Positions 6,695-59,701 of a stretch of 64,000 nt of DNA are shown here, piece by piece (the first letter of the stretch is position 1; each line of letters starts with the position of its first letter). Made by a program: the position numbers and the translations under genes. The stretch is from Ostrea edulis (Eukaryota). Under the pieces are notes generated by a model. It had not been told where the DNA came from and ran no database searches. It worked only from the letters and a program-made list of their open reading frames with translations. The stretch covers positions 42,408,001-42,472,000 of the forward strand of contig NC_079171.1 of the NCBI RefSeq assembly GCF_947568905.1, in the 5' to 3' direction.

Positions 6695-7702
6695 TTTTCT
6701 TTTTTTTGGGGGGGGGGGGTCTTGGGGCAGAGAATGTATAAACTTGGGTCGCGCTTCCCTTTGAAAAAATTATGGATCAGTCCCAGAATACTGACCCATA
6801 GCGTAAAAAAATGCAGAAAATTTCATTAGTGAAATATACAGTGTATGTACAAAAGACATTTCAAAAACAATATTTATATCATATTAAAACCCTGCTTAAA
6901 TCGCATTTCATTAATAAACCAGTTTAAAAAAGATTATTATGAATATAATAGAACTGCGACAAATCCTTAACCTTGGTTAGAGTTTCACCTCCTGTCTCAG
7001 TCTTTGCTTCTTAGACAATCTCAACATACCTTACATTTAGAGAGGATAAACGAGTATTCATGAACATCGATATCCCATACAAACTTGTCAGAGGATAACA
7101 CCCTACCCCTCTCCCCGATTTTTTGGCTTTTAAAGAAACGATATATTCGGTTTATTCATATTTTATTATCGTTGTTTTATATACTACGGTGCGTATTGAT
7201 CAAAGTTATTTCCATACGCAAAATCTCGAGGGGAAAATCTGATATTGATTAGATTGCTTGATTCGCCCATTGAGAGTATCCGCCGTATATAAAGGTATCA
7301 AGACACCCCCCCCCCCCCCCCCCCCCCCCGGTGACGGCTGGGAGGTGCAACAGATTCCGTTCGTAAAGATGGCAGTCACCGTTCATTCCACTGGGACACT
7401 TCTTTTTCCGTTAGGGGGTGAACTTTTTAATTTACTGGCGTTCTCATGGTAGATAAATACACTGTCATGTGTTGTAAACTTTACTTCATTGTGCTTACAT
7501 GTTTCCCACAACGCCCAGATGATAATTGCCAATCATTTTTCTGTACATATTAGACACAGAATCATATAGTTTGCAAATACACACTAATACATTGTAGCGC
7601 ACTTTTCAAAAATATCAAAGTAGATAAATACAATAAATAAACAAACTCACTAAACACAACAAAGCTCCCGGGAAATATTTGCTAGAGGAAAAATTTATTT
7701 AA

Positions 7703-8021
7703 CGATGCATATTACACCGGAGAAATTTGATATGGATGAAAAGTGGAGGATATGTACAACAATATTTTGAAATTGAAAATTTTCAAATGTACTTTATTTA
7801 CTCAAAAATGCAGTTTTAGTCGAAAACAATTTGAAAAGAAATTAAAACCCCTACTGGACTCGAACCAGCGATCCACAGTTCAACAGTCGACGTGCTAACC
7901 AACAGAGCTACTCAGCTAGGCGATAACTTCTTAAATGAATAGACAAATATATAGCTAATATTCATATTTTCATCCATGTTTTAAATGGAAGTCAGCTATT
8001 ATGACGATGTACAGAACCTCC
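7703..8021 (+). mobile_element. TTAA-flanked MITE (Kolobok-like) with an internal tRNA-like segment, copy 1
   Basis: TTAA at 7699-7702 and 8022-8025; collinear with 11544-11840, ~35577-35889 and ~40595-40823. Confidence 0.65.
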
Positions 8022-8417
8022 TTAACGAAAAAGAAACTGATTTTAACATACTGTAATTTGGCGTGAAATGAGAGCAGCATTCCAAGATCCCTACAGTGTT
8101 TTCAATCAATCTTAATCAGGGCCTGTCACAGTTACTAGTAACTTATCAAATCTATTTCCTTAGTTAGAAAATCTTACCATGTAAATTATGCAGATTTTTT
8201 TTTAAAATGAACCTTATCAAAATGAACCTTATCATTAGCTTTCGTAAAATAACGTATGCTAGATATAAGCATTTGACAACAGTTCGGTAACATTTTTAAT
8301 TCAATATCATCATATACAAAGAATTGCATTGACTTGGCCTAACGTAGAAATACACTTAACACTGTACGACCATATCGTACTCAGAATGTTCCATGAGGTC
8401 AGATTGTCGTAGGAAGA

Positions 8418-11400
8418 ATGACAAAGGATAAAAACGCAAGATTAGAACAGAACTGTGGGTGCTTCTACGTCACAAGCGCGCTTGTAATTGGCTGCATCCT
8501 TGCATCTCTTACTGCCGTGAATTTTTATCAAATATGGACTCTCAAACAGGATGTAGAGTTTCTAAAACTGCAGTGCAATCTCATAGCGGTAAGATGAATC
8601 TCAATATGCATACATTATTTCTTATTGTTTTACGTCCCTTCCAGAATATTTTTCTGATACTGAAACGTCACAGGCTTTTTATCTTTTACCTATGATGTAT
8701 TTAAACCAATTAGCTGTGACAGCTTAAACGTTCAAGTGACCTCGGATCAGTTCAGCTCACTCAAACCATATACAGTGACACATGAAGTTCATATACATAC
8801 TTGCAAATTACAATTATTGTACAGGTCAGAGGTAAATGTTAAGATGAAGAAATTTAGAATAACCTATCCTCACTATAGACGTCGTTTTAATGAGGTCTGA
8901 AAGAGAGAGAAAAAAACACCCCACGATTTCCGCTTCTAATGCATGAGCTTGACCAAAGAAAAATCCCTGCTTCAACTTCTCAGGGACAGGTTTGTCACAG
9001 CCGTGGGCTCGTATCCCTGCTCTACATATATTTTTTTATCCGCAGCGAGTCTATTTTAAAAACTGACAACTGAAATCTTGAGTTTGACATTGAGATCACC
9101 GCGTAAGGAGAAACTTCTGGGTTTTCATGTTCACAAATTGAATATATATATTTACAGGAGTTGTCTGTAGTAATTATATCACGTTAGCCGTAACTCGGTA
9201 CAGCTGCACTAGGGTAATTGCCATCACCGTTCACTGATCTGAAACATGCATATTTTATTGTTGTAATCCATAATCTATGATATCCTGTGAAAATAAGCCC
9301 CATACCAATTAAGATTCTGATTATTATTAGTGGTCACTTTAACATGGAGAAAACACAAGTTCATAATTCAATATTTACCAATGTATAATGTAAGCGTAAC
9401 TAATGAAAATAGCTATAAAGGTCTTTCCACAAAGAAAGAAGAAGCACAAAATCAAATAAAAACAAAAAGAATAGAGAAAATAAAGAAATAAAAACAACCC
9501 AGCATCTCTATAATAGGCATGACTGTACAAGTTTCAATAAACCAAGAAATAGAAAACACCTGACTTGACAACATTATTCATCAAACGTGCATACTATAAT
9601 AACACCTGTACGGTATAAACAATTCCATATTGAAATATTGCAGGGTGTATCATGGTAGAGGTCGTTACTATACGGTATACTCATAATAACAGTCACAACG
9701 ACTTACAGTTAATCATTTAAGCGACTATGATCGTCCAGTGCTTGTCATGGTCAGTAACATGTATTATCAGTGGCGGATTTAAGGGGGCGCAGCCTGCGCC
9801 CCCCCCCCCCCCCCACCCACCCACCCCCCCTAATTTTTTCAAATTTAAGGTAAATCGTGGTGTCTTGTTCAGAAAAATGTACTAAACGATAAGAGAAGCA
9901 ATAATTTCTTCCACTCCCGGAGAAATAAATGACAAAATCTTTTGATTTCTTGAATTACTTTATTGGGAGAACTTAATTTTGTCCAAAAACCCTTAAAATT
10001 TGCGTCATTTCATTAATTTCACCTTATTAAAAATGATAGAAAATAGTACAAATGACTAAATAGGAGACATATTTCAAGTCCTATAAAATATAGTGCCCCC
10101 CCCCCCCCCCCGTAACCACAATTCCTGGATCCGCCCCTGATTATAGAGTATACATGTATTTCTAAACTTCAAAAAAGTCAACTATACATGAATAAATACG
10201 AACACAAGCCTGGGAGCCATGGACTTCGAACCGTCTCGAGAACTTGACCAAATGAGCATCTCAAAACATGAAGAGGCTTATGATATACACGTATATACTT
10301 ACTTTTTCTTCCAGGATAACTCTAGAGAAGTTGTAGAAGACACGTCACGAAGCAAGAGGCAGGTTGTTAGTGATCTTAGTTCCTTTATAAGAAATATCAC
10401 GGTAAGATTCTCTAGAAATATCACGGTAAGATTCTCTAGAAATATTACGGCAAGATTCATAAGAAATATTACAGTAAGAAACACAACAGAAATATTACGG
10501 CAAGAAACATAATAGAAATACATGTATCATGGTAAGATTTAGTAGGAATTTTACGGTAAGATTTAGTAGAAATTTTACGGTAGGATTTAGTAGGAATTTT
10601 ACGGTAAGATTTAGTAGAAATTTTACGATAAGATTTAGTAGAAATTTTACGGTAAGATTTTGTAGAAATATGATAAAAATCTGGAATATCAGAACTATCA
10701 TTTCGTCTCCGATTCCGTTGCGATTTACTATTTAGTATATCCAACGAAATTTTGTTTTCTGCATTTACTCGGGCAACTTTGCAGAAAACAAGCAAATGTA
10801 ATATAATGAGTCCAGGCACTGAGCGTCATTTTTGAAAGTGGAAGGGTGGGGCAAACGAGGGAAAAAGTTGCCTTCATATTTGTCTTAAAAAAAATTGTTA
10901 TGATTAAAAGTAGTTCTACCCAAACCCTAAAATCGTCGAGGGGGTGGAGGGGGTGGGGATTATTTTTCAGTATGCTTAGTACATGTGTTCAATTCAACAG
11001 TTCAACCTTGCATTTCCACTATCATTTACCCCTACTATAAAAAGTGACCGATCTTTACATGTAAAAATGAGGAACTTTTTATGTACGTCTGTACGTCACA
11101 TGCAAAAAAAAAGGGGGGGGAGCGCTATTTTTTTCCTCTGGTTGTTACGTACCTGGTATTAATGTAAAGTTAAAATAGAAATGTTAAATTTTAAAAGATC
11201 AGGAAAATATCACCGAGATATTTTTAAAGAAATATAGGACATGTAGTGTTACGATAAGATTAAGTGTAAAAATAACATGAAAAGATTAAGTATAGAAAGG
11301 GGTGCAAATCAATTTTTACTTTTTTCGTCCATGAAAAAGGGGACTACAGACCCTAAAAGGGCAAATTATTGAATACCCCCCTTTACTAAGCAGTACTACT

Positions 11401-14400
11401 GTATGTCTTTCAGAACCAGCAATTGGCTGTACAATGTAACAGTAATACGACAATCTGTATACAAGGTCAGTACCATCTATGTAGGTTTCAGTCAGCCTTA
11501 CCGCGTACATTTCATATTCTTGATAATGTTAACCATGACTTAAGGAGGAATGGCATGCCTGTAAAATCTGATATGGATGAAAAAAGGAGGATATTTAGAA
11601 TTATGATTTGAAAATGAAATCTTTCAAATTTACCTTATCTATTTTTTTAAATACATGGGGGAAAATATAAAATCCCTGTCAAACTTGAAGCCACGATCTA
11701 TAGATCAGCAGTTGGAACACTAATCTACTGGGCTACCCAGTTAAGTAGATTTTAAAGGAATACATAAATATTGCTGATATTCATGTATTCATTCATATAT
11801 CTAAAGGAAGTCCGCCATTAAGACGATCTGTTAGTCCTCCTTAAGGTGCAAGTATGATCGCGTGAATCTTTATATATTATACAGTGTATTTAAACCTTTA
11901 GTTTATATATATTTGTGAGTGGCATGTTGTGATCATTGAAGGGATCACGTTTTCTTTTCTGATTATTCTCGTTAAATTATTTCAGGAAGCAAGGGTGATC
12001 CTGGTCTTCAAGGTACGAAACATCAATGGCGCTAAACTCTAAATTAAAGAGCTTAAATGTATACTGAATATCGCTACATGTAAGCATTGACATTACGTTT
12101 GGTGTTGCTAGCAATTCTTGTTGCAAGAGAGAGATGAAATATACAAAAGATAATTGTGGCCTTTTATTATAATTAATACATAAGATAGGTGAATTTGGAG
12201 TATGCAATTGACGATGCAACTGATTTTTTAAACATCTAGTTCCACAGTCAACGCAAGATGGTAACGGACCGAATTTGCGTGTAGACCGATTGAACAATAA
12301 CCGCATTGTCGCTTAAACACAGCGCTGACAACATATTTTTATCATGTTTATTTATGTGCGTATTTCAGTCGAAGTTTGTGTTAATGTTTGTGTATGTGCA
12401 TAATATCCATCAACATTTATGTGTCAAGGGTTACCCGGAAGTAAAGGCGATACCGGAAGTAAAGGTGATCGAGGGCTTACTGGACTTCCTGGTTTACCAG
12501 GTATAACTTGTACATGATAAACAGTTTGTCTTATGTTGAAATGGATGTAATTACAGACAACTAAAATATTCACGAATGCATTGCAATTACATATTTGGTA
12601 GAAATATCAGTAAGTGCAATACAGATCTAAACGTTACAGTATTTTCAGTTTCAAGTATAATATTCCATTTAGGTTCAGACGGATTCAATGGAACGAAAGG
12701 TGACACAGGACCGATGGGCCCTACAGGGGCTAAAGGTGAAACGGGTCTACCTGGGGTCAAAGGAGAAACCGGGGTTAAAGGTGACACAGGCTTACAAGGT
12801 CCACAAGGCGAGTGTCAATACGATGATAACGTATTTGTTTATAGAGTTTTCAATTCATCCAAAAAGAACCGGACTGAATGCGAAAATAAAACCAGATAAA
12901 ACATTCTTATTATGCATTCAGTAGATAGACAGAGATGGACACAGTGTGTCATGTTAAACATTGATGAAATCAAACTCTATGCATCTCAATTATATTGCAT
13001 TGTGAACAGGAGCATGTTTGAAGTTTCATCAGCACACAAACAAATCTAAAAAGAACGTCTTGATTTTTCTTTCAATAATAAAAGGTCTCAAGGGCGAAAT
13101 GGGTGACCCAGGCCAGAACGGACTTAATGGGACAGTAGGACCTTCCGGTACTCCGGGCGCAGCTGGACTCCCAGGAAGCAAAGGTCAGTGCAATTTTCGT
13201 AGTTAAACTTGCACAGGTCGGATGCCTATAAATGGTTGCAGCAAGACAATCTGTCAGTGAGTTTGCACCATTGCCTAGCTATCTTCGACTACATGTAGTT
13301 TCAACAAATATACATATACTGTATACAGGGTTATTTGGCATCGTGTGATTTTTTTTTTCTCATTCAACATTTGCAAACGTTTACGTTACGTTTTAAATTC
13401 GCACAGACACAGGTGTATCCAAAGAAAGATAACCCTGTTCCGTCACAATTTGCCCCAGTTGTAAATTCGACAACGAGGGCGAAAATAAAACGTGGTGAAT
13501 ATTTTCCCGTACACAGTAGTAGAACTACGAAAATATCATCGGTCCTCTACTGGATATAGTCTAAGATATATTTTACAGGTTAAAAAATAATTCGAAATAT
13601 CTTCATAGATCTTTAAATGATAAATTAAATACTGAAAGTATTATGAAAGGGTGATATTATATTACCTAGCACTCAATGATAGTACAATGAAACGTGGGGA
13701 TAACGAACAGTGATCAATTTCATAACTCCTATAAGCAATACAAATTAGAGAGTTGGGCAAACAATATATACGTGATATCTGTCGTGCATTAATCTATTAG
13801 ATCCTTCACATTGGAATAAAAATCGTGAAATTACAGGTGAACCGGGATTAAACGGACTCCCAGGATTACAGGGACTACAGGGAGCAACAGGGCTCCCAGG
13901 AAGTAAAGGGGAGCTCGGACCAAAGGGCGAGGACGGACCATTCGGACCAACAGGAGCCAAGGGGGAGCCGGGAATCAGGTCTGTCTGTTCGTCTGTGTGG
14001 AGGGAGTGTTGTTTCCTTGTGTGTCTCAGGTTCTTTTAGAATTGTTTTTATGACAGATGAGTGAAAGAGTACAAATACTTCTGTACATGCATATATTTAT
14101 TTGTGCATGAAAAGGTGAAAATAACGAACAGCGATCAATCTCCAAACTCCTATAAGGATTACAAAATAGAGAATTGGACAAACACGGACCCAATGATTAT
14201 TAGTCAAGACTACTCATACAAGGCTGGTTCATCATCTTCTCACGTATAATGTATCAGTTTATCATTGTTTATTCATTGGGTACTCAATGCTAAATCTAGA
14301 TCATCGAGATCATTACAAAAGGCATGCATCTTGATAGTTTTTTCAATGAAGAGAGTATATTTTAGCAAACTGTCTTAACAATTTCTGATAAGGATGTACA

Positions 14401-17400
14401 TATTCTTCATGTATGTCCATAAAATTGTGTAAAACATCGAATTCGGAGGAAGGAGCTAAAATACAGAGTTAAGTGTCATCATTCTTTAATCCTGATGTGA
14501 CAACTATTGTGTTGATATTATATCTGAAGGATTCAAAGAGTCGAACTTCCCATTGTAATCATGATGAGCCACATCAATTTGACTATATTACGATTTAAAC
14601 TCTATAATTAACAGACGATGAATAACTTTGCAAGTTATAAAATTTACATTTTTATTTGCCCGTAAACATTCTCGAAATTATTTCGAATGATATTCTAGCG
14701 GACTGCAAGGACGAAAGGGCGAAACTGGACCTCAAGGATTCATTGGTCAACCAGGGGTCAAAGGTGAGCAGGGTCAAATTGGACCAAATGGTGCTCCAGG
14801 AACACCAGGGCTGAATGGCATTCCAGGATCTCAAGGACAGAAAGGAGAAATGGGACCACAGGGACCTAAGGTTGGTCAATTTCTCTGTTTTTCTCTTACA
14901 TTTTTAAATTTTTATTTCTACATTTCAAACAATTACATAACATAAAGAAACCCTCCTGCTTATCTAAAGGGAAACACTGGTGATGCGGGTCCATTTGGTC
15001 CAGCTGGGGTGAAAGGAAATCCGGGTATGACTGGAGCCAAAGGAGGGAGGGGCGATAAAGGAGAAACCGGATTGATGGGATTGCCGGGTGTCCAAGGTCC
15101 AAAAGGAGATCAGGGGATGCAAGGTCAGGATATGAAATAAACGTATATATCAAGCGGCTTCTTTGGACAATCGGACACTGTCTTCACTATTGGTCACATG
15201 TACATGTCACATGGTTCATTACTGAAGTTATTGGTTTTTTTTGACAACGTCATAAAATACCTTTTGGTATTCTTTCCAGATAAATTTTCGAAGTGATATG
15301 TACAGAACAATGATATCTACATTCACTCTGATAGATTTGGTAATCAATTTTGTAAAGGTGTAAGGTGACAATCATATTTATTCCAAAGTACTTCGTATGC
15401 TAAAACACAAACACAAACAAACACACACACACAAACACAAACAGGCCACAGTCGTTTCAGTACATGTATTCTCATTGGTTAAGAAATGAGAATGGTATGC
15501 AAATAGATCTGACTAAATCTTCCGAGGGTGAAGATCAGAGTTGCGGAACGAAATCCTTCATGAGCGGAGATGTGCATGCATGTTAGCATATATAGTACTG
15601 CACCGATTGACGAATGATTTACCAATCAAGGTTTAGCCTCGATAATATGCACCAACTGCGCACTTTTTTGTGTGTAGCTGTAAATTTTGCAGTTGTTAAT
15701 GTTGTAGGTATTGAAGACAACCGATGTAAGACATTAAACCAGTCAACTAAAGCCATAGACACTTGATGTTACAATATATATAAAGAAATTACTTGACTTT
15801 CAATATAAGCGTGTTATTTTTTGCAACACCAAGCGGCTGTGACCAATTGAAAAGCCTGTACTAAAGCTAGATCACCAATTATTTTCAGTGATAAACCTTT
15901 GATGTTGCATTGTTTATAGCTTTCGAAAATTTAACAATTACGTATCTAAAACAAGTTAGATTATAAATGATAGATGCATGAGATATAGAGGCTTATTTTT
16001 ATTATGGAGGATATGACAACAATAATATGATAATGGGTTGGTTCTCACCGTTTTTGTCCTCCTATGATAAAGCATAGCATTTATTTCTTGAATGTTTAGG
16101 TTATCAGGGAGCAAGGGGTCAGAAAGGAGAAACAGGAATCACAGGTCCTCAAGGACTTCCGGGTTCTCTTGGGCCACAAGGGATCATGGGAATGAAAGGA
16201 GAACTCGGACCGCAAGGATTGCCGGGACTAAAGGGTGAAATGGGAGCTAGGGTAACTAACGAGATAAAAATGAGTTTCGGTCACGGAAACGAAATGTATT
16301 CCTTTTTTTGTCATACATGTTTCTTAAAAAATTTTACAGGGATTTACTGGATTCCAGGGTCCACCTGGCGTTGCCGGTGCTTCCGGTCCTCAGGGACAGA
16401 AAGGTGAACGAGGTCAGCAGGGGTACTTCGGACAAAAGGGAGAGAAAGGTGACACTGGAGCCGGCAGTAATTGTTGTGTACAGCTAGGTAAGGATATGTC
16501 TTTGGCGGATCTAAAAGAAAATATATTATTGGCGAATTCACATGAAAATGGTCACCGAATATGTTGGTACCAAAAATGATTTGCATCTAGTCTTTTGATG
16601 AAAATGATTCTCTTTAGTGAGTTGTCTTGACTTTTACTTCTACATATGTTATTACTTCTACAACGTATAAGTTTACATTGCTTTTAATCGTCATTACAAT
16701 TATTGACCACATAAGAATAATATTTTGTCTCACTAAAATCTCATTGAGGGGTCATTTCTAGGCAAAGACATACAGTGTACTTATTTTAAGAATTGCTTGT
16801 GCTTTGGTTCGCCTAGATATTGACACACTTTTGTTGTTACGGGTTACATTGCATTAAGGTCTTGTAGTCGATCGAAATCTACGAAGGACAATAAGTGTAG
16901 AATACGAGATAAAGGGGATGATAAAGTGCAGTCTCTCCAGAGTGATGTAATAGACATGTGCCACATATTCTTCTATATTTACAGCCAAACCAACCATTCA
17001 AGGAAGCATAGGAACAATTTACCACGTGACAGCTAAAGAAAACAACACGGTTATCTTACCATGTAAGGTCAACGGATACCCTTCTCCTACAGTCACGTGG
17101 TCTAAAAATAATGACGTATCACCGATCAAGCAGGGGGTGTTAACTTCCAATGGTTTGCTGCTGGTGGATGTTCACGTTGGAGATACCGGAAATTATACAT
17201 GCAAAGCAGAGAGCATTCTGGGAATTCAAGAAAAAGTTGTAGAACTAATTGTTAAAGGTATGAGATATTACTTCATATTTGATATCTACCATGTATGTTT
17301 AAAAATGAAAAAGATCGAATATATTTCGGAGCAAATATGAATGCATACAGTTATGAGACTTGTGTATCCGTTATTTGTAAGGATACCTTCAATTAACCTT

Positions 17401-20400
17401 GCAACTGAAAAATACTTCTAAATGAGTGATAAGTTGAGTTCCTATGACCAGGTTCAATTTCTAGTATCCATTCTATAATAGTGAAACCGAAACCTGCATT
17501 TGTAGTAACCGGAAGTATCTATTTGTTCCGATTTGCCTTAGGTAATGATCCTTAGTGCATGGATTGAGGATTTTAGAATAACCCCAATCACTGATAATCC
17601 TACTCTTGTAAAACTTAAAATTTCATTCACACAATGAAACGTTTAACAACAATAAAATTGACAGGGATGATGCAATATCATACTAGTTTCAGGTGTGATA
17701 ATAGCGTTAAATATTAAATTGTCATAACCTTTAGAGGCAATCACCAGAGTGATTTTATTTCTATATTCATGCTAGTATCTTGTTGATTATGCAGTGATGT
17801 AAATGATTTTATACGGAAACATGTTATTTGAAAGGCTAAGAAAATTTGTAACCACAACGGTTGTCTCCCTGGTGTTATCTGGGATTTAATTCTAACATTC
17901 AGACTTTCAAGTTCACAATATTGTTTTGTATAGTAGTGATGGAAGTCACATTTGTATAAGACAATTCTGTGAAACATTCGGTCGGAATGCATTGAATAAT
18001 GAATAAGTATGCTCTAAGTTTAAGAATCCTATCCCCCCCCCCAATCCATTTCTAATCAACAGGAAAAACATTTTAAAAGACTTTCTGATAGGCCTATTTT
18101 CCACGAAACGAATTGGATCAAGTCTAATCAAGCTATCAATGTCGTTCTAGACTAACTAGTGCCTCTACTAAGAAAAGCATGTCTGCAATTGGGATTGGCG
18201 CAAATGGTGTGTTCACATTTTGCTTTGAAAACCAAGTTCTGTGACTAGTCGGGGCATAGTCGACCCCCCCAGACTTGCACCCCCCCCGGGAGATTCCTGA
18301 TTACCGACGTCTGAAATGCAGACTGTCTGAATATTAAGATAATGGTATTTTACCTTTTTTGCAGACGGAGAAGCGAAGATTCATCCAGACCAGGAATATG
18401 TTGGGGCTAAGGTAATTGCTAACAAAACATTGAAAACAATTCCTCTGAATTTATACATGGACTTAGATTATCTTTCGATTCCAATTGTTATGTTGGTGGA
18501 CTGTTAGTCCCCGAGGGTCTCTATATATGTAATTGCTGTTATAAAATTTAGAAATTCATTTCAAAATGAAGGATTATCTCCCTCGCACATAGCTCTTATC
18601 CATAGACGAATTTGACTCCACTGTTTTGGCATACTGTTTTTCCCTAAAATAGCTCTAAAACGTCATTGTTATTTTGGATTTCAAACATTTCGGTTGAGTA
18701 TCACTGAAGAGACATTATTTGTCAAAATGCGCATCTGTTGCATCAAAATTGGTACCATATAAGTTTTACATGATGCAGGAGAGGTGTGGGACCAGTGCGT
18801 GCGTCATTTCCGCTCCTTGTCACAACAACACTATTCACTTCTTTATTTCCATTATTTAGGTCGGGCAAATTGTTCAAAACTTATGCAGGGTCACAGAAAC
18901 AGACCATTACAACCTCCAATATTCCAAGGTCACAGGGTCATTTCCGATTCACAATATCAACCCGGATGGAAGCGTTCGATTTGCTATGACGGGTGAGCGT
19001 GAGACTGGCGAATACCAATGCGAGGCTACCACCGATACCGGAATTGTGTTTGCAGCCTTCTATGGTAAGTCATGCTGAGGGAGTTTCTAATTGATGGATG
19101 TGCAAAACATCATTGAATTTATTAAAATGATTTGAATAGTCTCCTTTTGATGTAGCGTTATACTGAGTAAAATGGATGTGATTAATGTCATGTAGAAGTT
19201 TCGTTTAATTGATTAAGATAAGTTCGTATGATGACGCGACGGGACAACAAAATGAATCCAAATAATGCAATGTTTTCCAGAAGGCATATGACGATGAAAT
19301 AATACACATTGACGAAAGTGAATGTTTTGATGTTTGTATCAATAATTAATTCATCATTCTTAATCATTCACCACTTTCCAGTGTACAAGGACATGGGACA
19401 ACTGACATGTCAGACTACGTTTGCTGACTGTGCAACATTAGATAAATCGTACTGCGGGTAACTTTTTCATTTCGTATTGTACTACTCATTAAATAAGTAA
19501 GTTGTACTGCGGATAAATTTATGAAATTGATATTGTACAAATTATTTTGATGACAATAGAAATTTAATATAATGATGTTCCAGATAGGAAAATAAATATA
19601 CATAGGCTTCCGTAATAGACACGTTGGTTTTCGTGTTTGCTTCTTTCTTTTCTTTTTTTTTTTTTGTTGTTTTTTGTTTTTGTTTATGATGTTATACAAT
19701 GTATATATTCTAGTGCATTGGTCATGTTCATTTCAGCGGAACTTGCCCCGCAGGATGCACAGATCTGAACGAAGCATTCCATGCTCATCGCTTTGCATTG
19801 GTAAATATTTGTGTTTACGCTTGTGTTATCAGAATATTCTATAACACATCCCTATTTTCTGCTGCTCTTTGAGTTTTGATATTTGTCTTTTTTATGTCAG
19901 AACCTTGAAATCATAAATTTTTGGACATTTATACAACCAAGAATAACTTAAACAGTGGTGATCTAAAGTCTTTGGGCGGTCACGTGATATGGAAAATACA
20001 ACTTAAAATAAGATAAAATGATTTGCAATGACAGTAACAGGGATTATATGTTGTGAGAACCTCCTAGAAACCTCAGCATTTTCAATAAAACGTACCGACT
20101 AAGCTAATGGTTTGGTCATAGTTGAATTAATGGTCTATCTATACATACAATATATGGATCTGCATTGCATATGTCAAAAGAAGGAATATTTATACTGCAT
20201 ATCGAAATGAGACCTGAGTGACTTTTAACCAGGTCACTCGTACTTCAACTTGATAATTTGGTGTATTCAGAATTTGCCGGTGTGTCGGGCTGCTTTAAAC
20301 AGTGGTGGTCTAAAGTCTTTGGGCGGTCACGTGATATGGAAAAATGAGCATGCCAAGTAAGAGACTTGATCTTCTGGGTCAATATGTTATTTTATTTCTT

Positions 20401-21425
20401 TATTTACAATCGTCTGGGTCAATATGTTATTTCATTTATTTATTTACAATCGTCTGGGTCAATATGCTATTTTATGTATTTATTTAGAATCTTCTGGGTC
20501 AATATGTTATCTTATTTATTTATTTACAATCTTCTGAGTCAATACGTTATTTTATTTATTTATTTACAATCTTCTGGGTCAATATGTTATTTTATTTATT
20601 TATTTACAATTTTCTGAGTCAATGTTATTTTATTTATTCATTTACAGTGGTTTGGGTCAATATGTTATTTTATTTATTTATTTACAATCGTCTGGGTCAA
20701 TAAGTTATTTTATTTATTTATTTACAATCGTCTGGGTCAATAAGTTATTTATTTACAATCAAACAACTTTCTAAGTACAAACTGTAAACAGTTAACAGCA
20801 TCCTGAGTAGTAACATTAAATAGTTAACAGCATTTAAATTACTAATTGTAATTATCAAATTTAATATCATTCTGAGTAAAAACTGAATGCTTTACAATAT
20901 TAAGAGTAATAACTGCGAATGGTTTACAACTTTAATGACATATGCACCGGAGTTAAGAGCTGCTGCTCATACCCTCATGTATTTTCAAAACTGAAAATTA
21001 TATGTTATATTTACATTTTATTTTCATTTCTGTCCAAATATTCCCAGCTGCTAAAATAGTCGTACTATATTTATCAAGATTCATACGCACATTTCTCACA
21101 TTCATGATGAAATTGCTATCTTTTAATTGGTAAATTTATCGAAGATAAATACATTGCAGATGATTGATTTAATGAAATAATCTTCCGCTTTAATCATACC
21201 ACCTTATTTATTGTATCCAATGTGAAGTATAAAACGTGTGTCTATTTACAACGCTGATTGCTTTATCATATCACATTGGATACGTTGTCAATATGTTTAC
21301 AGTATTGTCATTTCTTCATTACATCACTTTGAATACGTTGTTCATTTGTTTACAGTGGTGGAGAGGCATCTGAGTTTGTGCAGGCCACGCCAGTTGTCCG
21401 TCCTCCGATTACCGTGCTAGGATAA
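8418..21425 (+). CDS. Type II transmembrane collagen with two Ig domains and a C-terminal LCCL-like domain (colmedin/gliomedin-like architecture), 743 aa
   Basis: 19 phase-consistent exons: 8418-8588, 10315-10401, 11414-11465, 11986-12012, 12429-12500, 12673-12807 (GC donor), 13085-13183, 13837-13978, 14699-14870, 14970-15123, 16100-16251, 16340-16487, 16985-17257, 18365-18411, 18860-19064, 19382-19457, 19737-19800, 20271-20356, 21356-21425; total 2232 nt ending in TAA. Exon 1 [57 protein letters not shown] (signal anchor plus coiled coil); exon 2 has RSKR; exon 3 has [11 protein letters not shown]; 120 Gly-X-Y triplets, then SNCCVQL; Ig1 C..W..DTGNYTC; Ig2 ..ETGEYQC; then LTCQTT...GTCPAGC...[26 protein letters not shown] at 21702-21707. 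Confidence 0.9.
9768..10139 (-). mobile_element. MITE, second (inverted) copy of the 3237-3593 family
   Basis: Termini CAGTGGCGGATTT...GGATCCGCCCCTG; the body is the reverse complement of 3237-3593. Confidence 0.8.
10390..10672 (+). repeat. 24-bp tandem repeat overlapping the exon 2 splice donor of gene 2
   Basis: Units AGAAATATCACGGTAAGATTCTCT and AGAAATTTTACGGTAAGATTTAGT, about 11 copies; most contain ACG|GTAAGA. Confidence 0.9.
11544..11840 (+). mobile_element. TTAA-flanked MITE (Kolobok-like), copy 2
   Basis: TTAA|GGAGG...CCTCC|TTAA: short TIR with a TTAA target duplication. Confidence 0.75.
13317..13518. mobile_element. MITE with TACTGT...ACAGTA termini (Tc1/mariner-type)
   Basis: TACTGTATACAGGG...CCCGTACACAGTA inverted ends. 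Confidence 0.65.
18502..18770 (+). mobile_element. Non-autonomous retrozyme/PLE-associated repeat carrying a degenerate hammerhead ribozyme
   Basis: Contains TATCA-CTGAAGA-GAC-ATTATTT-GTC-AAAA-TGCGCA-TC-TGTTG at 18699-18740; element boundaries approximate. Confidence 0.55.
18699..18740 (+). ncRNA. Degenerate minimal type I hammerhead ribozyme (probably inactive)
   Basis: CUGAAGA core, 3-bp helix II (GAC/GUC), U-GCGC-A helix III and AUC cleavage triplet; GAAA is mutated to AAAA and helix I has a mismatch. Confidence 0.5.
20368..20760. repeat. 40-bp minisatellite in intron 18 of gene 2
   Basis: About 10 copies of TCTGGGTCAATATGTTATTTTATTTATTTATTTACAATCG. Confidence 0.9.
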
Positions 21426-23044
21426 CGAGGAACATGTGAACTACTGTAAACTTACTAGGATAACGAGGAACATTACCATGTTAAATACTGTAAACGTACT
21501 TAAGTTTACGCTGAAGATTTTATTTAGTCCGCCGTAATTTTGAACACTAATGCGTACTTCTATCCGATTTACTGCATAAATGGGGAGTTTTCACGAATTT
21601 ATTTGGGATCATAGGTAAAGTATACACCAAGCAGAAGAAAGTGCATTATATACATGTACGTCTACAGTTATTCTGAAATACTCGAGAGTTGATTAATATA
21701 TAATAAAATGCGCCGTACAAAACGTCCATGTTTCTAAGTTTTTTTCTTCTATTTTAATATCACTCTATAATCATGTGTCTATGTTGAAGTTTATTGGACT
21801 CGCGCTTTCTGGTGCCAAAGTCGTATACGATTTTTACCACAACTGGACTATGGTCGATGCTAGTTACACAAACGTTAACTTCTAGGTGGTATCAATGTTA
21901 ACGTTATATAGATGTGAAAGTATTTACTTTTAACTAAGGTTGATGCTTTACTGTATATTACTTACCTACAACATTGACCGGAGCTATATGTATTTATGAC
22001 GTGGTACATGTACAAAGTAAATCCATTCCTTTCATTCCATGAGAAATTATAAAATCATATATAGCCTTGCACATCCCTCTCGCGTAACAGCAATTCAAAA
22101 TGTCTTTATCTTATTTATTTTCAAAACTACGGCCATAAAAAATAAACAAGAAGACTAAGATTTCAAGTTTATGCTGATGTTTACCAACATCAAGTGTATA
22201 AGAGCAAACATATCGAAATAGAAAGATTTCATAAATTCCTGTTTGGTAACTATGTTTTTCTTTGATGTCGATATATCTATGAATTGATCTTTTCAAACCG
22301 CTCTACTTGTATTTCCATTCGACCACGTGACATCTTAATTTTGTATTTTTATATCCTTGATGTCTGGTACTACATATCAACTTTAACCTCCCCACCCTTG
22401 TTAAGAGATGATCTGCAAAAACAACACACACCAAGGCTGATCATTGGATTTGACCAATAGTGGTCCACCTATCGTCTAACAAAGGACAACAGGTAGTGAT
22501 ATGTACTGGGAAGATGCATAACGCATTGATGAATTTTTTTTCAGTATAATTTTCCTATGATACCACCATCAAGAAAATAATTATAAGATTCATTTCTTAT
22601 CATGTAATCATGTTTTTAAATGGTAAAACTAATAGTTTATCTCGTAAAAAAAGCTTTAATTAACGTTTTTGAAATGGCGCGTAGGAATACACGTACGTAA
22701 CAATGAACACAACAACATGGCTGTGCGTTAAGCTGAGCAGAGTTATATAGATCGGATGCAATGGCTAGAATTGAATTAGATATGAAGGACTAAGACAAGC
22801 GGTGACTCGATGTATGTTGCGTTGTGTTGGAGGAGACGTTGAACACTGGTTGTGTCGTGGGAACGTTTTTCAACCAATCACAATCACCGTATCTTCACCA
22901 AGACGATAAATATTAAATAATTTCTGGATGTTTTAGTGTGTTACAAATACAGTTAAAATTAAGCCTCAGACTTGGATTCTTAAAATGTATGATTACATCA
23001 GAGTTACAGAAAAGATACATTTTAAGAATCCAGGTCTGTATCTG

Positions 23045-39400: not shown

Positions 39401-40893
39401 GTTTTCCCTTGATCCGGCCCCGATATTTACCTCGTGATCACCGCATTCCACCATGTTGTTACAATCAGTCAGTATGGGGACCCCGTTACAACTCAGACAC
39501 CGCGGACCTGACAATGCTGTAGAGAAATCAAAAATAATAGCACACATTGTAGAGAACAACATAAAGATCAGAGTCAAAAAAAGGGAAAAAAAATACTAGC
39601 CATGCTAGCACACTCTATATTTTTAAAAAGAAGATGCATTGGTATCGTGGAATCGTGAAGAAATCACGAAACGTGTATACAAGCAGTATCTCAATACTCC
39701 GCGTCCTTAGAAACGTGTATACACGCATTATCTCAATACTCCGCGTCCTTAGAAACAAGTATACAACCATTATCTCAATACTCCGCGTCCTTAGAAACGT
39801 GTATACAAGCAGTATCTCAATACTCCGCGTCCTTAGAAACGTGTATACAAGCAGTATCTCAATACTCCGCGTCCTTAGAAACGTGCATACACGCATTATC
39901 TCAATACTCCGCGTCCTTAGAAACGTGTATACAAGCAGTATCTCAATACTCCGCGTCCTTAGAAACGTGCATACACGCATTATCTCAATACTCCGCGTCC
40001 TTAGAAACGTGTATACAAGCATTATCTCAATACTCCGCGTCCTTAGAAACAAGTATACAAGCAGTATATCAATACTCCGCGTCCTTAGAAACGTGGATAC
40101 AAGCATTATCTCAATACTCCGCGTCCTTAGAAACAAGTATGGAACGTGATAGCTGTCTGAAGATGAAGGTGTTACAATATGACGTGATGACGTCATTATA
40201 TGATGACGTGCCTACATAATATATGATGCGTGTTAGCGCTTCATGAAAAGTATGCTTGCATTGAGCGTTGCTGTTCACACTCACATGTATTTTCAAAACT
40301 GATATTTTCATATTCATATTTTACTTTTATTTCTGTCAGAAATACTTCCGTCTGTTAAAAACGTCGTGTCATAGATACACATATTAACTGCCCATTAAAC
40401 ACATTCATAGGGAAATGGCTCTCATTTCAAATGGTAAGATATATATCGGAGGTAGTGTATATATTCAGATATGACGCGTTTGTATTAAGAAATTCATAAA
40501 GAAATTCGATCAATAAGTATATTATATTCTCTTGAGTAAACAGATGAAAAACCAGAAGTTCCACCGCCTTATGGATTAATTAGTGAACTGACCTTAATGT
40601 CAGCAAAATTTGCATATCCCTTTTAAAGATTGCCTAGCTGGGTAGATCAGTTTGTTAACGTGTCGTATGCTGATCAGTAGGTCGTGGGTTCTAATTTTGT
40701 TTTTAATCAATTTCTGCTAAAACTGCATTCTTTTTACTAACTAAAGTAAATTTTCATAGTACCATTGTACATATCATCCTCTTTTCATCCATACCAAATT
40801 TCTCTAGTATGTTATTCCTCCCTTTAAAGATTGCAAGGAAACTCTTCACTTACCTGCTCCAATTACGGATAACAGAATCAAAAGTTTAATCAT
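25805..40893 (-). CDS. Secreted mosaic protein: signal peptide, 2x Ly6/uPAR-like (three-finger), Ig, Thr/Pro mucin-like stalk, 2x ShKT; 457 aa
   Basis: 10 phase-consistent GT-AG exons: 40893-40854 (MIKLLILLSVIGA), 39516-39431 (CLSCNG..DC..ECGDHE), 38213-38142 (GCYTQK..AGCISMQ), 37479-37341 (IC..GKRDITNCYECC..PCNTHLCG), 34182-34094 (CYQCDD..DC..YCGLDE), 33852-33778 (QCFTEK..LGCQRKR), 31448-31340 (VC..CNECCDHDYCNIGLCG), 30704-30586 plus 29453-29300 (Ig: LRC..KW..YGTYTC), 26295-25805 (Thr-rich, CCDTDPRC..CAKTCGLC, CIDTDPRC..CPKACGVC, stop); total 1374 nt. Minus-strand AATAAA at 25747-25752. Confidence 0.88.
27225..28110. mobile_element. Penelope-like element fragments (3' region, then a degenerate RT C-terminus plus 3' region in opposite orientation)
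   Basis: 27480-28110 (+) encodes degenerate ..STSASYLYILLKIDINGKL..YISQLIRYTRACSAYDQFL..; 27225-27430 is the shared 3' repeat in the other orientation. Confidence 0.7.
28965..29192 (-). mobile_element. Penelope-like element 3' repeat
   Basis: GTGAAGATAACGAACAGTGATCAATCTCATAACTCC...CCAAGAACGGCGTAACAATC; related pieces at ~13690-13760, 14130-14190, 32845-33107, 36160-36260, 41310-41460, 41805-42040 and 42690-42860. Confidence 0.7.
30830..31150 (-). mobile_element. tRNA-headed SINE
   Basis: Minus-strand head CCGCGGTGGTCTAGAGGTAGAGCG...GGTTCGAATCC (A and B boxes); its 3' tail is shared with the SINEs at 32455-32717 and 56176-56415. Confidence 0.75.
31412..31735 (-). repeat. 66-bp tandem repeat containing the splice acceptor of gene 3 exon 7
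   Basis: CCTAG anchors at 31448, 31514, 31579, 31645 and 31711 (spacing 66, 65, 66, 66). Confidence 0.9.
31940..32780 (-). mobile_element. Penelope-like element RT C-terminus and 3' end, interrupted by a SINE
   Basis: Minus-strand peptide DITESSTSYSYFDILLSIDINGKLTTQLYDK..FSFSIVNFP..SNIALSPGYGVYISQLIPYTRACSAY joins across the SINE. Confidence 0.75.
32455..32717 (+). mobile_element. 5'-truncated SINE with (AATC)n tail and 13-bp TSD
   Basis: Core GTCGTAAGAGGCGACTAAAT; flanked by TCTATGCTTAATA (32442-32454) and TCTGTGCTTAATA (32718-32730). Confidence 0.8.
33499..33760. other. Assembly gap (262 N) in intron 6 of gene 3
   Basis: Run of N; the exon chain closes in frame without needing sequence from the gap. 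Confidence 0.99.
35235..35391. mobile_element. Small MITE with CAGTGGCGGAT-type TIRs
   Basis: CAGTGGCGGATCC...AAATCCCCCACTG; the inverted symmetry extends into the flanks (CATTG/CAATG). Confidence 0.65.
35577..35889 (-). mobile_element. TTAA-flanked MITE, copy 3 (inverted)
   Basis: Reverse-complement match to copies 1 and 2; contains TAGCTCAGTGGGT...GGTTCGAGTC. Confidence 0.65.
38690..39240. repeat. Low-complexity T/G-rich tandem repeat
   Basis: Recurring GGGCTACAACAATTATTTGTAGAAATGTTTCGTTTTGTTTTCTTATTTTTG with variable GTT tracts. Confidence 0.85.
39668..40138. repeat. 42-bp minisatellite in intron 1 of gene 3
   Basis: About 11 copies of AAACGTGTATACAAGCAGTATCTCAATACTCCGCGTCCTTAG. Confidence 0.95.
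40595..40823 (-). mobile_element. TTAA-flanked MITE, copy 4 (inverted, partial)
   Basis: Shares TTTCATCCATACCAAATTTCTC...TTCCTCCC|TTAA end and the degenerate tRNA-like segment. Confidence 0.55.
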
Positions 40894-53662: not shown

Positions 53663-56600
53663 ATGGCAACTGATCAACGTCCCTCTGCCGACAGAGGGCG
53701 TGTCCTTGTGATGCTGTTCATTGTTGTGTCGTTGCTAGGGGTTATTGCAAGCGTGTGTTTGATATACATCCAACTTTTGGAAATTAAAAACGAACTCGTT
53801 AATCTGAAACATTTAAGAGACGTTGATGAAAATGTGAGTACACCTATTATTTGGGATTTTTGTTTGTGTTTTCAATAAGAGGATTTGAGTTCGACCCCTT
53901 TGTAGGACAAGTGTCGTACTCTGTCGTGTAAATCCAGATACCAATGTTTTGGCAGCATTAAACACAGGAAAAGATACGTGTATTATTTACATTTGGAATC
54001 GAGGAATACGATAACGTTTGCCTTTTTCGATTATTGTAACTATCACGTAATTATGACAATGGCCAGAAAATGTTTTTGAATTTATGCATACAATAATAGG
54101 ATTACGATTCGAATTCATGCATACAGTAATTGGGTTGAATTTAACGGCGAATAGGTCGAATTTTGAATTCAATGAAACATTTTTTTAGTTACATGTATAG
54201 ATAGAGTTGATTATGACACTGTTAAAGGTATACATATTTATAGATACATATTATGTATATTTATGTAGCCAATATTACACATTTACACGTACATACTTCT
54301 TTTTGCTAACAATGCCTCCCAGGGCCCTTGATTGGTCAATGAAATATCTTGTATTTATAGAGATTATAAATTTTTACATTTACAGGTACATAGATTCGTA
54401 TACTTTCAGAAATAATTATTTTCATAGCATCTTGTTCAGTATCACATTTTGCGAGAGAGGGGGCGTTGTTGTAGTTCAGTATTACATTTTGTGTTGGAGG
54501 GGGCGTTGTTGTAGTTCAGTGTTACATTTTGTATGGGAGGGGGCGTTGTTGTAGTTCAGTGTTACATTTTGTGTTGGAGGGGGCGTTATTGTAGTTCAAT
54601 ATTACATTTTGTGTTGGAGGGGGCGTTGTTGTAGTTCAATATTTCATTTTGCGAGAGAGGGGGCGTTGTTGTAGTTCAATATTACATTTTGTGTTGGAGG
54701 GGGCGTTGTTGTAGTTCAATATTACATTTTGCGAGAGAGGGGGCGTTGTTGTAGTTCAATATTACATTTTGTGTGGGAGTGGGCGTTGTTGTAATTCAAT
54801 ATTGCATTTTGTGTGGGAGGGGGCGTTGTTGTAGTTCAGTATTACATTTTGCGTGGGAGGGAGCGATCTTCCCCTCTATATGTTTATCACAATATATTTT
54901 ACCCCACGTTCTGTTTATCTGATCATTTACGGGATTGCTCCTCGCAAATTCGTTGATACAGGCCTAATAAGATTCAGACAATCATAAGCTGATGGTATAG
55001 GTGGGTAATTAACGTGCTTGACACACTTTATAAATATTCTATGCACCTTAAATTTGAAAAAAAAACTCCAGACTTTAAAATTCTAGTACAGTGTAAGATT
55101 TTCGAGTACTAATTCGTATTAGAAATACTGTGGGATCATTTTAATTCGTGGGGGCCTTTTGTGGCCAAGCAACATTTTGTTTGTTCGTGGGGACGTAATT
55201 TCGTGGGTAAGCAATACGATGTCACTAAGAGAGATGAATCTACTTGGTTTAAAAAGATGTTCGTGGGGACGTAATTTTGTGGGTAAGAGTAACCCACGAA
55301 TTCCACGAACATCGATCTCCCACAAACAATGATGATTCTACAGTACTCATAAAATGAATTATCTAAGTAAGTTCGAATAGCGTGCTATATGTACAGTGTT
55401 TATGAATATTATCCATTATAAGATCTGAAGTAATTCTATAGAAAAAATGAGATAATTGTTTTGTTAGGCGAGGGTTTCTGATCCGTTGCTGTCCTAACAC
55501 TCTTGGCATATATTGTCAATTCAAGCTTTATTGTTCAAATTTTTGCATATGTTAACAATAGGAGGGAAGGGACATATTTAGAACATGAAAATTCTGAAGT
55601 CTGAGCTTAGTGGGTCCACAGCCACGCCCATGTTGGTGCTGAAAGGACAAAACTCCCGGAAGCTCATAGCATGCCGGGTATTTTATGGGGAACATTTCTA
55701 CATAGAATACTGTGTTTTATGTGAAAAAAAATCATGTTTAGGGTTCAGATTTGTTTTATTTTCATAATTGCTATGATTGAATCCTCTCCTGAAAGCATCA
55801 GAATCATGACGAAATAGTATTGTATAATTATGAACACTGTTATGTTATGTCCATGATAATAGAGTCTTTAAGTATGATTCAGTCTTCGCACAATTCTTAG
55901 AGAAATTGTAACCTTCTCTCGCGTGATCAATACTTATGCAGAACATTTAATACGCTATTACTCTTTTTAAGTATGGAGATGAAAGGAAAGAAGACTTCCA
56001 CAAGCACCGGTCTCAACAGAGACCTGTAGGTGTACAGAAGCGACAGACAGCCAACACATTCATGCAGGAATTACTGCAGGCCCAGGTAGCCAGTTAGCTC
56101 ACATTTACCTATAGTTTAAACAGATTGTAGCTCACGTGATCTTATTTATTTGGTAAAACTTTTAAATCGCCAATCCCGTGGGGATCCGGTCTTCAGTACC
56201 CCTGGCTTGTCGTAATAAGCGACTTAATGAATGAGACCGCAAAAACCGAGGTCTTGTGTCACAGCAGGTGTGTCACGATACAGATCCCTCCTTGCTCAAA
56301 AGCCGTAAGCGCTGAGCATAGGCCGACATTTTTCTTTACTTCGCCGGCAATGGTGACGTCTCCATATGAGGTATAAATTCTCGAGAGGAACGTTAAACAA
56401 TATTCAACCAATTAATCATTAAATCGACAAACACAAGAGGTTATGGTGTCATATTACATGTAGTAGCTAGCCCGAATAGCCGTGTCACAACACATAAGGG
56501 AGGTTCAGATACGGCGTCGTCGCACGTAGCTCCTCTAAGCTACTACATATATACAGGTAGCTCCTCTAAGCTATTGTTTACACGTAGATCCTCTAAGTTA

Positions 56601-59600: not shown

Positions 59601-59701
59601 ATTTAACAAATGTTGACAGTGGGACATCGGGAAATTATACGTGTATTGGACAAAATATTGTTGGAATAAAAACGAAAACTATCTCAATAAATATTCAATA
59701 A
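53663..59701 (+). CDS. Short type II transmembrane collagen-Ig protein, paralog of the 8418-21425 gene; 222 aa
   Basis: Exons 53663-53833 (MATDQRPSADRGRVLVMLFIVVSLLGVIASVCLIYIQLLEIKNELVNLKHLRDVDEN; 171 nt, same as gene 2 exon 1), 55972-56085 (..VQKRQ..), 57763-57814 (AHVLESHCANDSRLCMRG; 52 nt, same as gene 2 exon 3), 59035-59121 (GPKGDKGDPGLPVQRITPPAPPSKQCACL) and 59457-59701 (Ig: ITCQVTGNPQPYVKW..SGNYTC..NIQ*). All GT-AG, same phases as gene 2, total 669 nt. Confidence 0.85.
54430..54862. repeat. 40-bp minisatellite in intron 1 of gene 4
   Basis: GGGGGCGTTGTTGTAGTTCAATATTACATTTTGTGTTGGA units. Confidence 0.9.
55126..55345. mobile_element. MITE with TACTGT...ACAGTA termini
   Basis: TACTGTGGGATCATT...AATGATGATTCTACAGTA, with internal TTCGTGGG subrepeats. 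Confidence 0.7.
56176..56415 (+). mobile_element. SINE copy, same family as 32455-32717
   Basis: CCCGTGGGGATCCGG...GTCGTAATAAGCGACTTAAT...GGCAATGGTGACGTCTCCATATGAG... Confidence 0.75.
56525..56957. repeat. ~31-bp minisatellite in intron 2 of gene 4
   Basis: TAGCTCCTCTAAGCTATTACATATATACACG units. Confidence 0.9.

Follow-up and report, generated by a model that had tools for sequence, protein, structure and literature searches.

The window analysed here, a stretch of 64,000 nucleotides of the Ostrea edulis genome, contains at positions 8418–21425 of the plus strand a gene of 19 exons (OX387711.1), whose reading frame stays open from the ATG at 8418 to the TAA at 21423–21425, with AG acceptors and GT donors and with neither stops nor frameshifts. 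The NCBI model built on identical DNA (P0058, 746 aa), named 'collagen alpha-1(II) chain-like', differs from our exon model by a single Gly-X-Y triplet, and P0058 served as the query wherever the whole protein was searched. A 49-nt dead copy of exon 18 and minisatellites are found in the introns, and a mini-collagen paralogue lies in the same window at 53663–59701. Scanning the locus for Rfam families and tRNAs gave no matches.

Exon 1 (8418–8588), which coincides with the N-terminus of P0058, encodes the start codon, a cytoplasmic tail, the membrane anchor and a short heptad stretch. The anchor comprises residues 14–36 (23 residues, 8457–8525) and has a mean Kyte-Doolittle hydropathy of 2.05; as read from its sequence, the encoded chain is a membrane protein of type II that has a 13-residue cytoplasmic tail and a signal-anchor, although the weak positive-inside signal (net +1) counts against this orientation. 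The coiled coil described in the initial annotation amounts to no more than a heptad-like 3-4-3-4-3 pattern of hydrophobic residues behind the anchor (I39, L42, V46, L49, C53, I56), which was read by eye and extends over some 18 residues. Exon 2 (10315–10401) encodes the stalk, in which the furin-type motif RSKR occupies residues 69–72 (10348–10359) and is followed by Q, and exon 3 (11414–11465) places a C-x6-C linker (residues 94–101, 11435–11458), common to oysters and scallops, immediately ahead of the first Gly-X-Y; anchor, convertase motif and linker had all been noted initially. An R-x-K/R-R motif is present in each of the five orthologues (RSKR, RTKR, RTKR, RHKR and RHRR). For known collagenous proteins of type II, the furin site of shedding is located just ahead of the first collagen domain (PMC7848082), and it is likely that a proprotein convertase sheds the O. 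edulis ectodomain.

The collagenous region is encoded by exons 4 (11986–12012; 27 nt, 3 triplets, phase 1-1), 5 (12429–12500; 8 triplets), 6 (12673–12807), 7 (13085–13183; 11 triplets), 8 (13837–13978), 9 (14699–14870; 19 triplets, Pfam Collagen 5.2e-11), 10 (14970–15123), 11 (16100–16251; 17 triplets, alignable to the relative contig L002) and 12 (16340–16487). Exon 10 contains an RGD motif that is kept in three oysters. In exon 12, the final 14 triplets are followed by SNCC, the CC knot of which (16472–16477) is conserved in relatives, and two contigs of relatives (L001 and L002) align at 16338–16491. The donor of exon 6 is uncertain, so that the Gly-X-Y run, uninterrupted throughout, amounts to 119 triplets if the GT donor at 12798 is used, to 120 if splicing takes the GC donor at 12807, and to 121 in the NCBI model, which uses a non-canonical junction at 12808/12809 and starts exon 7 at 13077/13078, adding GIK. 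The NCBI version needs a non-canonical intron; canonical splicing was ruled out as the source of this extra triplet. Rod length is conserved, with 120–124 triplets in the orthologues, and the Pfam Collagen family matches P0058 at 7e-60. Because 119–121 triplets extend at 0.286 nm per residue, the rod would measure about 100 nm, and the initial reading of 120 unbroken triplets, a CC knot and a rod of this length is upheld within the latitude of the donor choice.

Two Ig domains follow the rod, the first of which is clear and the second, also claimed initially, borderline. Ig1 is encoded by exon 13 (16985–17257), alignable to L001 and L002, and matches the Pfam I-set family at 1.8e-14 in the exon search and at 5e-15 in P0058 (54–56 bits, above the cut-off of 23.7). 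When this exon was used to search for homologues, nothing came up beyond ORF fragments of prokaryote style that represent the same exon in relatives (81–92% identical); these served to fetch contigs. Ig2 starts in exon 14 (18365–18411), with a 16-residue segment conserved in P0009, L001 and L002, and continues in exon 15 (18860–19064; LCRV to GEYQC; I-set E 0.056). It retains the G-E-Y-x-C motif together with the cysteines of strands B and F, but in the oyster it falls below the Pfam cut-off (I-set E 0.056–0.09, 13 bits), and in the scallop orthologue its match to Ig_2 is narrowly below (E 7e-6, 26.6 bits vs. a cut-off of 27). The C-terminal domain, of about 85 residues and six cysteines, starts with a 16-residue segment in exon 16 (19382–19457), which is 85–88% identical to L001 and L002. 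Exon 17 (19737–19800) runs from GTCPAGC to HAHRFAL and has orthologous exons at the further genomic loci L009 and L010, and exon 18 (20271–20356) spans segments of 12 and 11 residues. Exon 19 (21356–21425) encodes NGGEASEFV, with GGEA-EF invariant across the family, and a variable tail ending at the TAA stop. The 21-letter C-terminal motif singled out in the initial annotation is present in exons 16–18.

Full-length orthologues with the same domain order were found in Crassostrea gigas, C. virginica, Ylistrum balloti and Pecten maximus (P0012, P0057, P0027 and P0059; 738–756 aa), so that the search of other proteomes proposed initially recovers four such proteins from oysters and scallops. The joining of the exons, likewise proposed for verification, is seen in these orthologous gene models and in a metatranscriptome fragment from a relative (P0018), in which the last seven exons are joined in mRNA, colinear from Ig1 to the C-terminal domain. 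Contigs of relatives align to the window at exons only, and the phases of exon 16 are identical in L009, L010 and O. edulis. Between oysters and scallops, identity is 61% in the C-terminal domain, 37–43% in the Ig domains and 11–24% at the N-terminus, and exons 12–16 yield a dN/dS of 0.078 at a dS of 1.36. Judged from these comparisons, the gene is under purifying selection and is conserved at least across oysters and scallops. An artefactual model or a decaying pseudogene, with unrelated collagen, Ig and Cys-rich exons wrongly joined by eye and by gene predictors, could be argued from the fact that the sequencing runs listed with the locus (n = 4) are all genomic DNA, with contigs that span introns, none being O. 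edulis RNA, as well as from the one non-canonical junction of the NCBI model and the dead exon copy and minisatellites of the introns. Such a reading is nevertheless extremely improbable, given that the 19-exon order and phases recur in the gene models of five species and at two additional genomic loci, that the frame is free of stops and frameshifts, that between genera the exons alone can be aligned, with a low dN/dS, and that the transcript fragment of a relative crosses six of the junctions. The O. edulis gene is almost certainly intact, with the architecture as modelled.

Pfam LCCL (PF03815) is the top match for the isolated C-terminal domain in all five sequences tested, scoring 18.5 bits in O. 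edulis, 21.0 in C. gigas, 21.1 in C. virginica, 19.2 in Ylistrum and 14.8 in the fragment (E-values 4e-4 to 3e-2), and, once collagen and Ig families are set aside, it is the best match in P0058, P0057, P0012 and P0027. The profile is matched at positions 1–69 or 2–81 of 96. The spacing C655-x18-C674-P-A-G-C678-x18-C697 (743-aa model) agrees with that of the four cysteines of LCCL. Six family members show no variation at these positions, and C674, C678 and C697 align with cysteines of cochlin. The segment VCRAALNSG...GGHV is present with its key positions invariant and with Asn in place of the LCCL His in C-AA-H-G. Where LCCL has v-y-G-t--Y, the family has HAHRF and the divergent relative L010 has VVTGY; the L010 counterpart of exon 18, a 28-residue exon, matches LCCL on its own (16.2 bits, E 0.012, profile positions 47–70). 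In PDB sequence searches, the cochlin LCCL structure 1JBI was the top match for the C. virginica domain (E 0.8), with CPxGC, C-AA---G and GG-V aligned, this being one of three orthologues; the O. edulis and scallop domains returned only noise, and the family profile had no match at E up to 10. Taken singly, the four C-terminal exons returned nothing or noise from Pfam and the PDB, as pieces of 21–28 residues that are too short, and AlphaFold2 models of the domain reached mean pLDDT values of 36.3 and 39.4 (6- and 12-row alignments), too low for fold comparison. No second LCCL-like region was found in the window, including the region after the mini-collagen paralogue.

The sub-threshold scores leave room for a lineage-specific Cys-rich module unrelated to LCCL, sharing CPxGC and C-AA---G...GG-V by chance or convergence. 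Every member stays under the LCCL gathering cut-off (22.6 bits), the final 15–27 profile positions are unmatched, the invariant HAHRF and two extra cysteines are foreign to LCCL, the PDB searches are negative but for one orthologue, and pLDDT values of 36–39 give no confident fold. We nonetheless consider an unrelated module improbable, because the isolated domain has LCCL as its leading Pfam family in five sequences whose identity goes down to 60%, with a correction for 24,736 models already contained in the E-values of 4e-4 to 2e-3, because the far more divergent L010 matches LCCL through a single 28-residue exon and carries VVTGY at the v-y-G-t--Y position, and because a search of 177,635 PDB sequences with the C. 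virginica domain ranks 1JBI first and the four-cysteine spacing agrees with LCCL. The C-terminal domain is thus quite probably a divergent module homologous to LCCL. The LCCL-like effector of the initial annotation stands as the leading Pfam assignment in the members tested, but at 14.8–21.1 bits it does not attain family threshold, and cochlin 1JBI leads the PDB sequence matches for one orthologue in three.

Several families of collagenous type II membrane proteins share parts of this architecture. Like the MACIT collagens XIII, XXIII and XXV and the nematode COL-99, the oyster protein has a type II orientation, a short juxtamembrane coiled coil and a furin-type site just N-terminal to the collagen, and MACITs exist as both membrane and shed forms (PMC7848082). 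The combination of a type II anchor with a furin-type site ahead of the first collagen domain is found in the sequences of five species, with cleavage predicted. MACITs, however, have several collagen domains with non-collagenous breaks and lack terminal globular modules, whereas in the oyster protein about 120 triplets form a single unbroken run followed by Ig-Ig-LCCL-like modules, and no sequence relationship to MACITs was seen beyond Gly-X-Y. NCBI names the scallop orthologues 'collagen alpha-1(XXIII) chain-like'. With the colmedins (gliomedin, UNC-122, COF-2) it shares a transmembrane segment, a stalk with a convertase site, a collagen region and a globular effector, and colmedins release their ectodomain, which serves as a multivalent ligand (PMC7848082; also PMC2064815). 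It differs from them in its much longer collagen part and in lacking an olfactomedin domain: at E up to 10, the Pfam matches of P0058 and P0057 include no such family. Class A scavenger receptors (SR-A, MARCO, SCARA3-5) are trimeric, with a long unbroken collagen domain in the case of MARCO, and resemble the oyster protein in their type II orientation and in a collagenous stalk that presents C-terminal recognition domains. We know of no furin shedding among them, and the oyster protein bears Ig-Ig-LCCL-like heads instead of SRCR or C-type lectin domains, neither of which appears among its Pfam matches. Ectodysplasin A, a furin-shed trimeric ligand (PMC7848082), is likewise of type II, collagen-containing and equipped with a furin-type site, but its collagen stretch is very short and its head is a TNF-homology domain; TNF and C1q families are absent from the Pfam matches of the oyster protein. 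The transmembrane-furin-collagen-effector scaffold claimed initially is real, its domain order being confirmed and its head distinct from those of these families.

On the side of the LCCL proteins (cochlin, Limulus factor C, CRISPLD/Lgl1, DCBLD and vitrin), the likeness lies in the four-cysteine spacing and in CPxGC, C-AA---G and GG-V, and the difference in the sub-threshold scores, the His to Asn change, HAHRF for v-y-G-t--Y, the two extra cysteines and a module end that is short or missing. To our knowledge, no described LCCL protein has a collagen helix or carries the module at the tip of a rod. Literature searches on LCCL with collagen, molluscs or oysters, on oyster transmembrane collagen and on the accession numbers returned no description, in agreement with the initial remark that no named family of this architecture was known. 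Databases file the family under automatic names as collagen II, IV, XI or XXIII 'like'; we read the oyster-scallop family as an additional variant among collagenous type II membrane proteins.

The best overall explanation, which we hold to be likely, is a membrane-anchored, sheddable collagen rod with an Ig-Ig-LCCL-like head, for which we infer trimerisation, shedding, the nature of a ligand and an immune role. The juxtamembrane heptads would bring three chains together, and these would zip up to form the rod, which disulfides would lock at both ends. A furin-type convertase would then cut after RSKR, some 30 residues ahead of the helix, freeing a soluble trimer with three Ig-Ig-LCCL-like heads that could bind a partner, either a microbial surface or a cell or matrix component, at high avidity. 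Binding is likely to take place at the end domain, because it is the most constrained part of the protein.

The same protein might instead organise matrix or cell adhesion, in analogy to collagens XIII, XXIII and XXV, COL-99 and gliomedin, with the shed rod binding Ig-family or other receptors on neighbouring cells in neuromuscular, epithelial or larval tissues and not microbes. I-set Ig domains are typical adhesion modules, the RGD of the rod is retained in three oysters, and the sole transcript evidence, the P0018 fragment from what we take to be a plankton sample, is compatible with larval expression. One conserved copy per species and a dN/dS of 0.08 have, moreover, a housekeeping or developmental look, unlike a fast-evolving immune gene. 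Against adhesion, collectins, C1q and MARCO are all built as clusters of heads on a collagen stalk. The studied transmembrane-furin-collagen proteins, scavenger receptors excepted, are all developmental or adhesion ligands (PMC7848082), yet LCCL-bearing proteins such as Limulus factor C belong to antimicrobial pathways (PMC10672452). On balance, adhesion is a serious alternative to which we give somewhat less than even chances, and a pattern-recognition role is less probable. More speculative still is the notion that the shed trimer is a soluble bivalve pattern-recognition molecule built on the collectin/MARCO principle, with HAHRF as a putative microbe- or metal-binding patch in an LCCL-derived head; if true, it would be the first collagen-stalked LCCL receptor and, outside the vertebrates, a new branch of collagenous defence molecules.

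Few classes make up the well-studied group of collagenous type II membrane proteins, namely the MACITs, the colmedins, ectodysplasin and the class A scavenger receptors; each is defined by its head domain and has proved to be an important ligand or receptor. Since molluscs commonly shuffle domains in this way, the family described here overturns nothing known. To this group the bivalve family adds another head, in which an LCCL-like module joins two Ig domains; the rod that carries it is unusually long, and its length is retained between oysters and scallops. It represents a testable candidate for a multivalent molecule of recognition or adhesion in oysters of commercial importance, and one well suited to the question of what LCCL-type modules bind.

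The gene at window 8418-21425 corresponds exactly, from start codon to stop codon, to that of an NCBI protein of 746 aa, collagen alpha-1(II) chain-like [Ostrea edulis] (P0058), coded on record OX387711.1 of GCA_947568905.1, in which the stretch 42416118-42429725, comprising the gene and 300-base flanks, is identical at every letter to window 8118-21725. Long Gly-X-Y open reading frame pieces, eight in number, lie on the plus strand at 12.4-16.5 kb and nowhere else in the region. Splice sites read by hand, with AG acceptors and GT donors, define 19 exons that together keep 741-744 codons open, and the resulting model departs from P0058 only by a single triplet (GIK), where exons 6 and 7 meet. 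The triplet count depends on the exon 6 donor: a GT at 12798 gives 119, a GC at 12807 gives the 120 uninterrupted triplets of the initial annotation, and the NCBI model has 121. On this DNA, the extra GIK (window 12798-13085) requires a CG..AT or GA..TA intron, which excludes a canonical-splice source; inclusion of GIK gives a gapless alignment of the oyster orthologues, and leaving it out gives canonical splice sites. The joined exons served in scripts only, and whole-protein searches were made with P0058.

The initial observation is confirmed, all of its landmarks being present in the sequence: a membrane anchor (residues 14-36), an RSKR furin-type site (residues 69-72), a C-x6-C linker (residues 94-101), a CC after the collagen helix, two subsequent Ig domains and, in exons 16-18, the motif [21 protein letters not shown]. 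The coiled coil amounts to only about 18 residues with 3-4 hydrophobic spacing, as judged by eye. Pfam recognizes Collagen (7e-60) and I-set (5e-15) in P0058, with LCCL as the best match outside the Collagen and Ig groups; the second Ig domain gives a weak score of 13 bits in the oyster and matches Ig_2 with an E-value of 7e-6 in a scallop orthologue. The olfactomedin, TNF, C1q, SRCR, and C-type lectin domains are all missing from the Pfam matches of P0058.

Comparative evidence strongly indicates that the locus is a real, working gene. A length-free HMMER search with exon 15 as query identified full-length relatives in Crassostrea gigas (XP_011453280.1, 738 aa, named collagen alpha-5(IV)), C. 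virginica (A0A8B8C332, 750 aa, collagen alpha-1(XI)-like), Ylistrum balloti (XP_060066662.1, 755 aa, collagen alpha-1(XXIII)-like), and Pecten maximus (756 aa, also collagen alpha-1(XXIII)-like), and all four agree with the O. edulis model in how the exons are joined at each boundary. The runs holding the locus are genomic DNA only. Exon joining is supported by these relatives and by a 207-aa marine metatranscriptome fragment (P0018), which runs unbroken from the first Ig domain through the second to the C-terminal domain, indicating that the corresponding exons are joined in the mRNA of a relative. In short genomic contigs from a Crassostrea-like relative, only the parts corresponding to exons 9-16 align to the window, with boundaries within a few bases of the model; the introns of these contigs are shorter than those of O. 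edulis and cannot be aligned. Exons 12-16 yield a dN/dS of 0.078 at a dS of ~1.4, and two further genomic loci (L009 and L010) encode the Ig-Ig pair and the three C-terminal exons with phases as in O. edulis.

Several repeats are embedded in the gene. The repeat unit of a 24-nt minisatellite (window 10390-10671) spans the exon 2/intron 2 boundary, and its copies retain GGTAAGA at 10401 (the donor that the model uses), 10425, 10531, 10555, 10603, and 10651. The second copy is in frame, and use of its donor would extend the stalk by VRFSRNIT, adding one more N-glycan sequon. Intron 14 holds an interspersed repeat present in very many copies (window 18490-18775): across four DNA runs, the summed contig depth is 1e5 to 4e6 over the repeat and 4-130 next to it. 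The repeat has no tRNA or Rfam match. In intron 17, a 49-nt copy of the exon 18 core [15 protein letters not shown] (window 19948-19996 versus 20295-20343, 48/49 identical) looks like a dead partial duplicate, since it has no stop-free reading in phase; Logan contigs of DNA runs end at this copy. A 40-nt tandem array of ~10 copies with 90% identity (window 20369-20755) begins 13 bases past the exon 18 donor.

The nature of the C-terminal domain was addressed on isolated sequences. LCCL is the top Pfam match in all five, with 18.5 bits (E 0.0024) in O. edulis, 21.0 (4e-4) in C. gigas, 21.1 (3.6e-4) in C. virginica, 19.2 (0.0014) in Y. balloti, and 14.8 (0.034) in the metatranscriptome fragment, but none reaches the LCCL gathering cut-off of 22.6 bits; the matches cover positions 1-69 or 2-81 of the 96 in the profile. 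The 28 residues of exon 18 from L010 alone score 16.2 bits (E 0.012) at LCCL positions 47-70. Against PDB sequences, the best match of the C. virginica domain is the cochlin LCCL (1JBI), at an E-value of only 0.8, in an alignment that pairs CPSGC and ICGAAVHRG with counterparts in [14 protein letters not shown] and GGHV with GGPV; the O. edulis and scallop domains gave noise matches only, and the family profile gave no match. The cysteine spacing, C-x18-CPxGC-x18-C, is consistent with LCCL, and two AlphaFold2 runs on the domain returned low pLDDT (36 and 39). Taken together, homology to LCCL is quite likely, the assignment being probable rather than proven, and the earlier interpretation is largely right and partly supported. 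An H-A-H-R-F stretch (exon 17, window 19737-19800) does not vary among oysters, scallops, the metatranscriptome fragment, and L009, and is replaced by VVTGYAV for HAHRFAL in the divergent L010; it lies where canonical LCCL has v-y-G-t--Y, and might bind a metal or a ligand.

Of all parts of the protein, the C-terminal domain differs least between oyster and scallop (61% identity), followed by the collagen (46%), the Ig domains (37-43%), and the tail, anchor, and stalk (11-24%). Despite this divergence, R-x-K/R-R followed by Q, C-x6-C before the helix, and CC after it are kept in every species compared, and uninterrupted triplets number 120-124 in oysters and Ylistrum, with a longest run of 110 in Pecten. 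This pattern of conservation suggests that the cleavage site is functional, that disulfide knots lie at either end of the helix, that the rod length is under selection, and that the last domain of the head is the part critical for binding. An RGD in the helix (exon 10, window 15050-15058 region; residue 346 in the model and 349 in P0058) is shared in position by the three oysters and is not conserved in the scallops.

The window also contains a mini-collagen paralogue (53663-59701), whose membrane anchor is encoded by an exon at 53663; the locus further has four Gly-X-Y triplets (59031-59066) and a single Ig exon at 59435-59698 that is 36% identical to the first Ig domain; no second Ig or LCCL-like exon follows as far as the window end. 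In the L010 locus (6860-15912 of an ENA assembly contig), the Ig-Ig-LCCL-like exons share the phases of O. edulis, and only seven Gly-X-Y triplets lie within 10 kb upstream; the locus may represent a mini-collagen form retaining the LCCL-like head. A Pinctada imbricata protein (KAK3095652.1) shares the Ig-Ig pair (47-48% identity) and, where the LCCL-like end would be, continues with Ly6/uPAR-like cysteine modules, then a Thr/Pro stretch, and finally a third Ig. A weak match links the LU-like part of this protein to window 39431-39511 (minus strand), in the neighbouring gene, and the layout results either from shuffling of domains or from a chimeric gene model.

In known collagenous type II membrane proteins, trimer assembly starts at the membrane side, and furin-type convertases free these proteins by cutting immediately ahead of the first collagen domain (PMC7848082). 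The oyster protein would follow this design, with a shed product consisting of three Ig-Ig-LCCL-like heads on a rod predicted to measure 102-104 nm (119-121 triplets at 0.286 nm/residue), close to the ~100 nm initially proposed. While its working mode resembles that of MACITs and colmedins, it belongs to neither, since its helix is uninterrupted and it lacks an olfactomedin domain; it also falls outside the class A scavenger receptors and the ectodysplasins. No account of a collagen-Ig-LCCL protein or of these accessions turned up in the literature searches, in line with the initial remark that no named family with this architecture is known, and the gene models of the family are public, but under automatic collagen names.

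Two roles for such a product are closely balanced. Microbe recognition would be in keeping with the LCCL module of factor C (PMC10672452). Adhesion or matrix signalling, as in MACITs and gliomedin, would fit the low dN/dS, the single conserved copy, and the RGD retained in oysters. Collagen stalks are also the design of collectins and MARCO, which speaks for recognition, and the transcript from what is presumably a plankton sample speaks for adhesion. On balance, we lean only slightly towards a role of the oyster protein in adhesion or matrix signalling.
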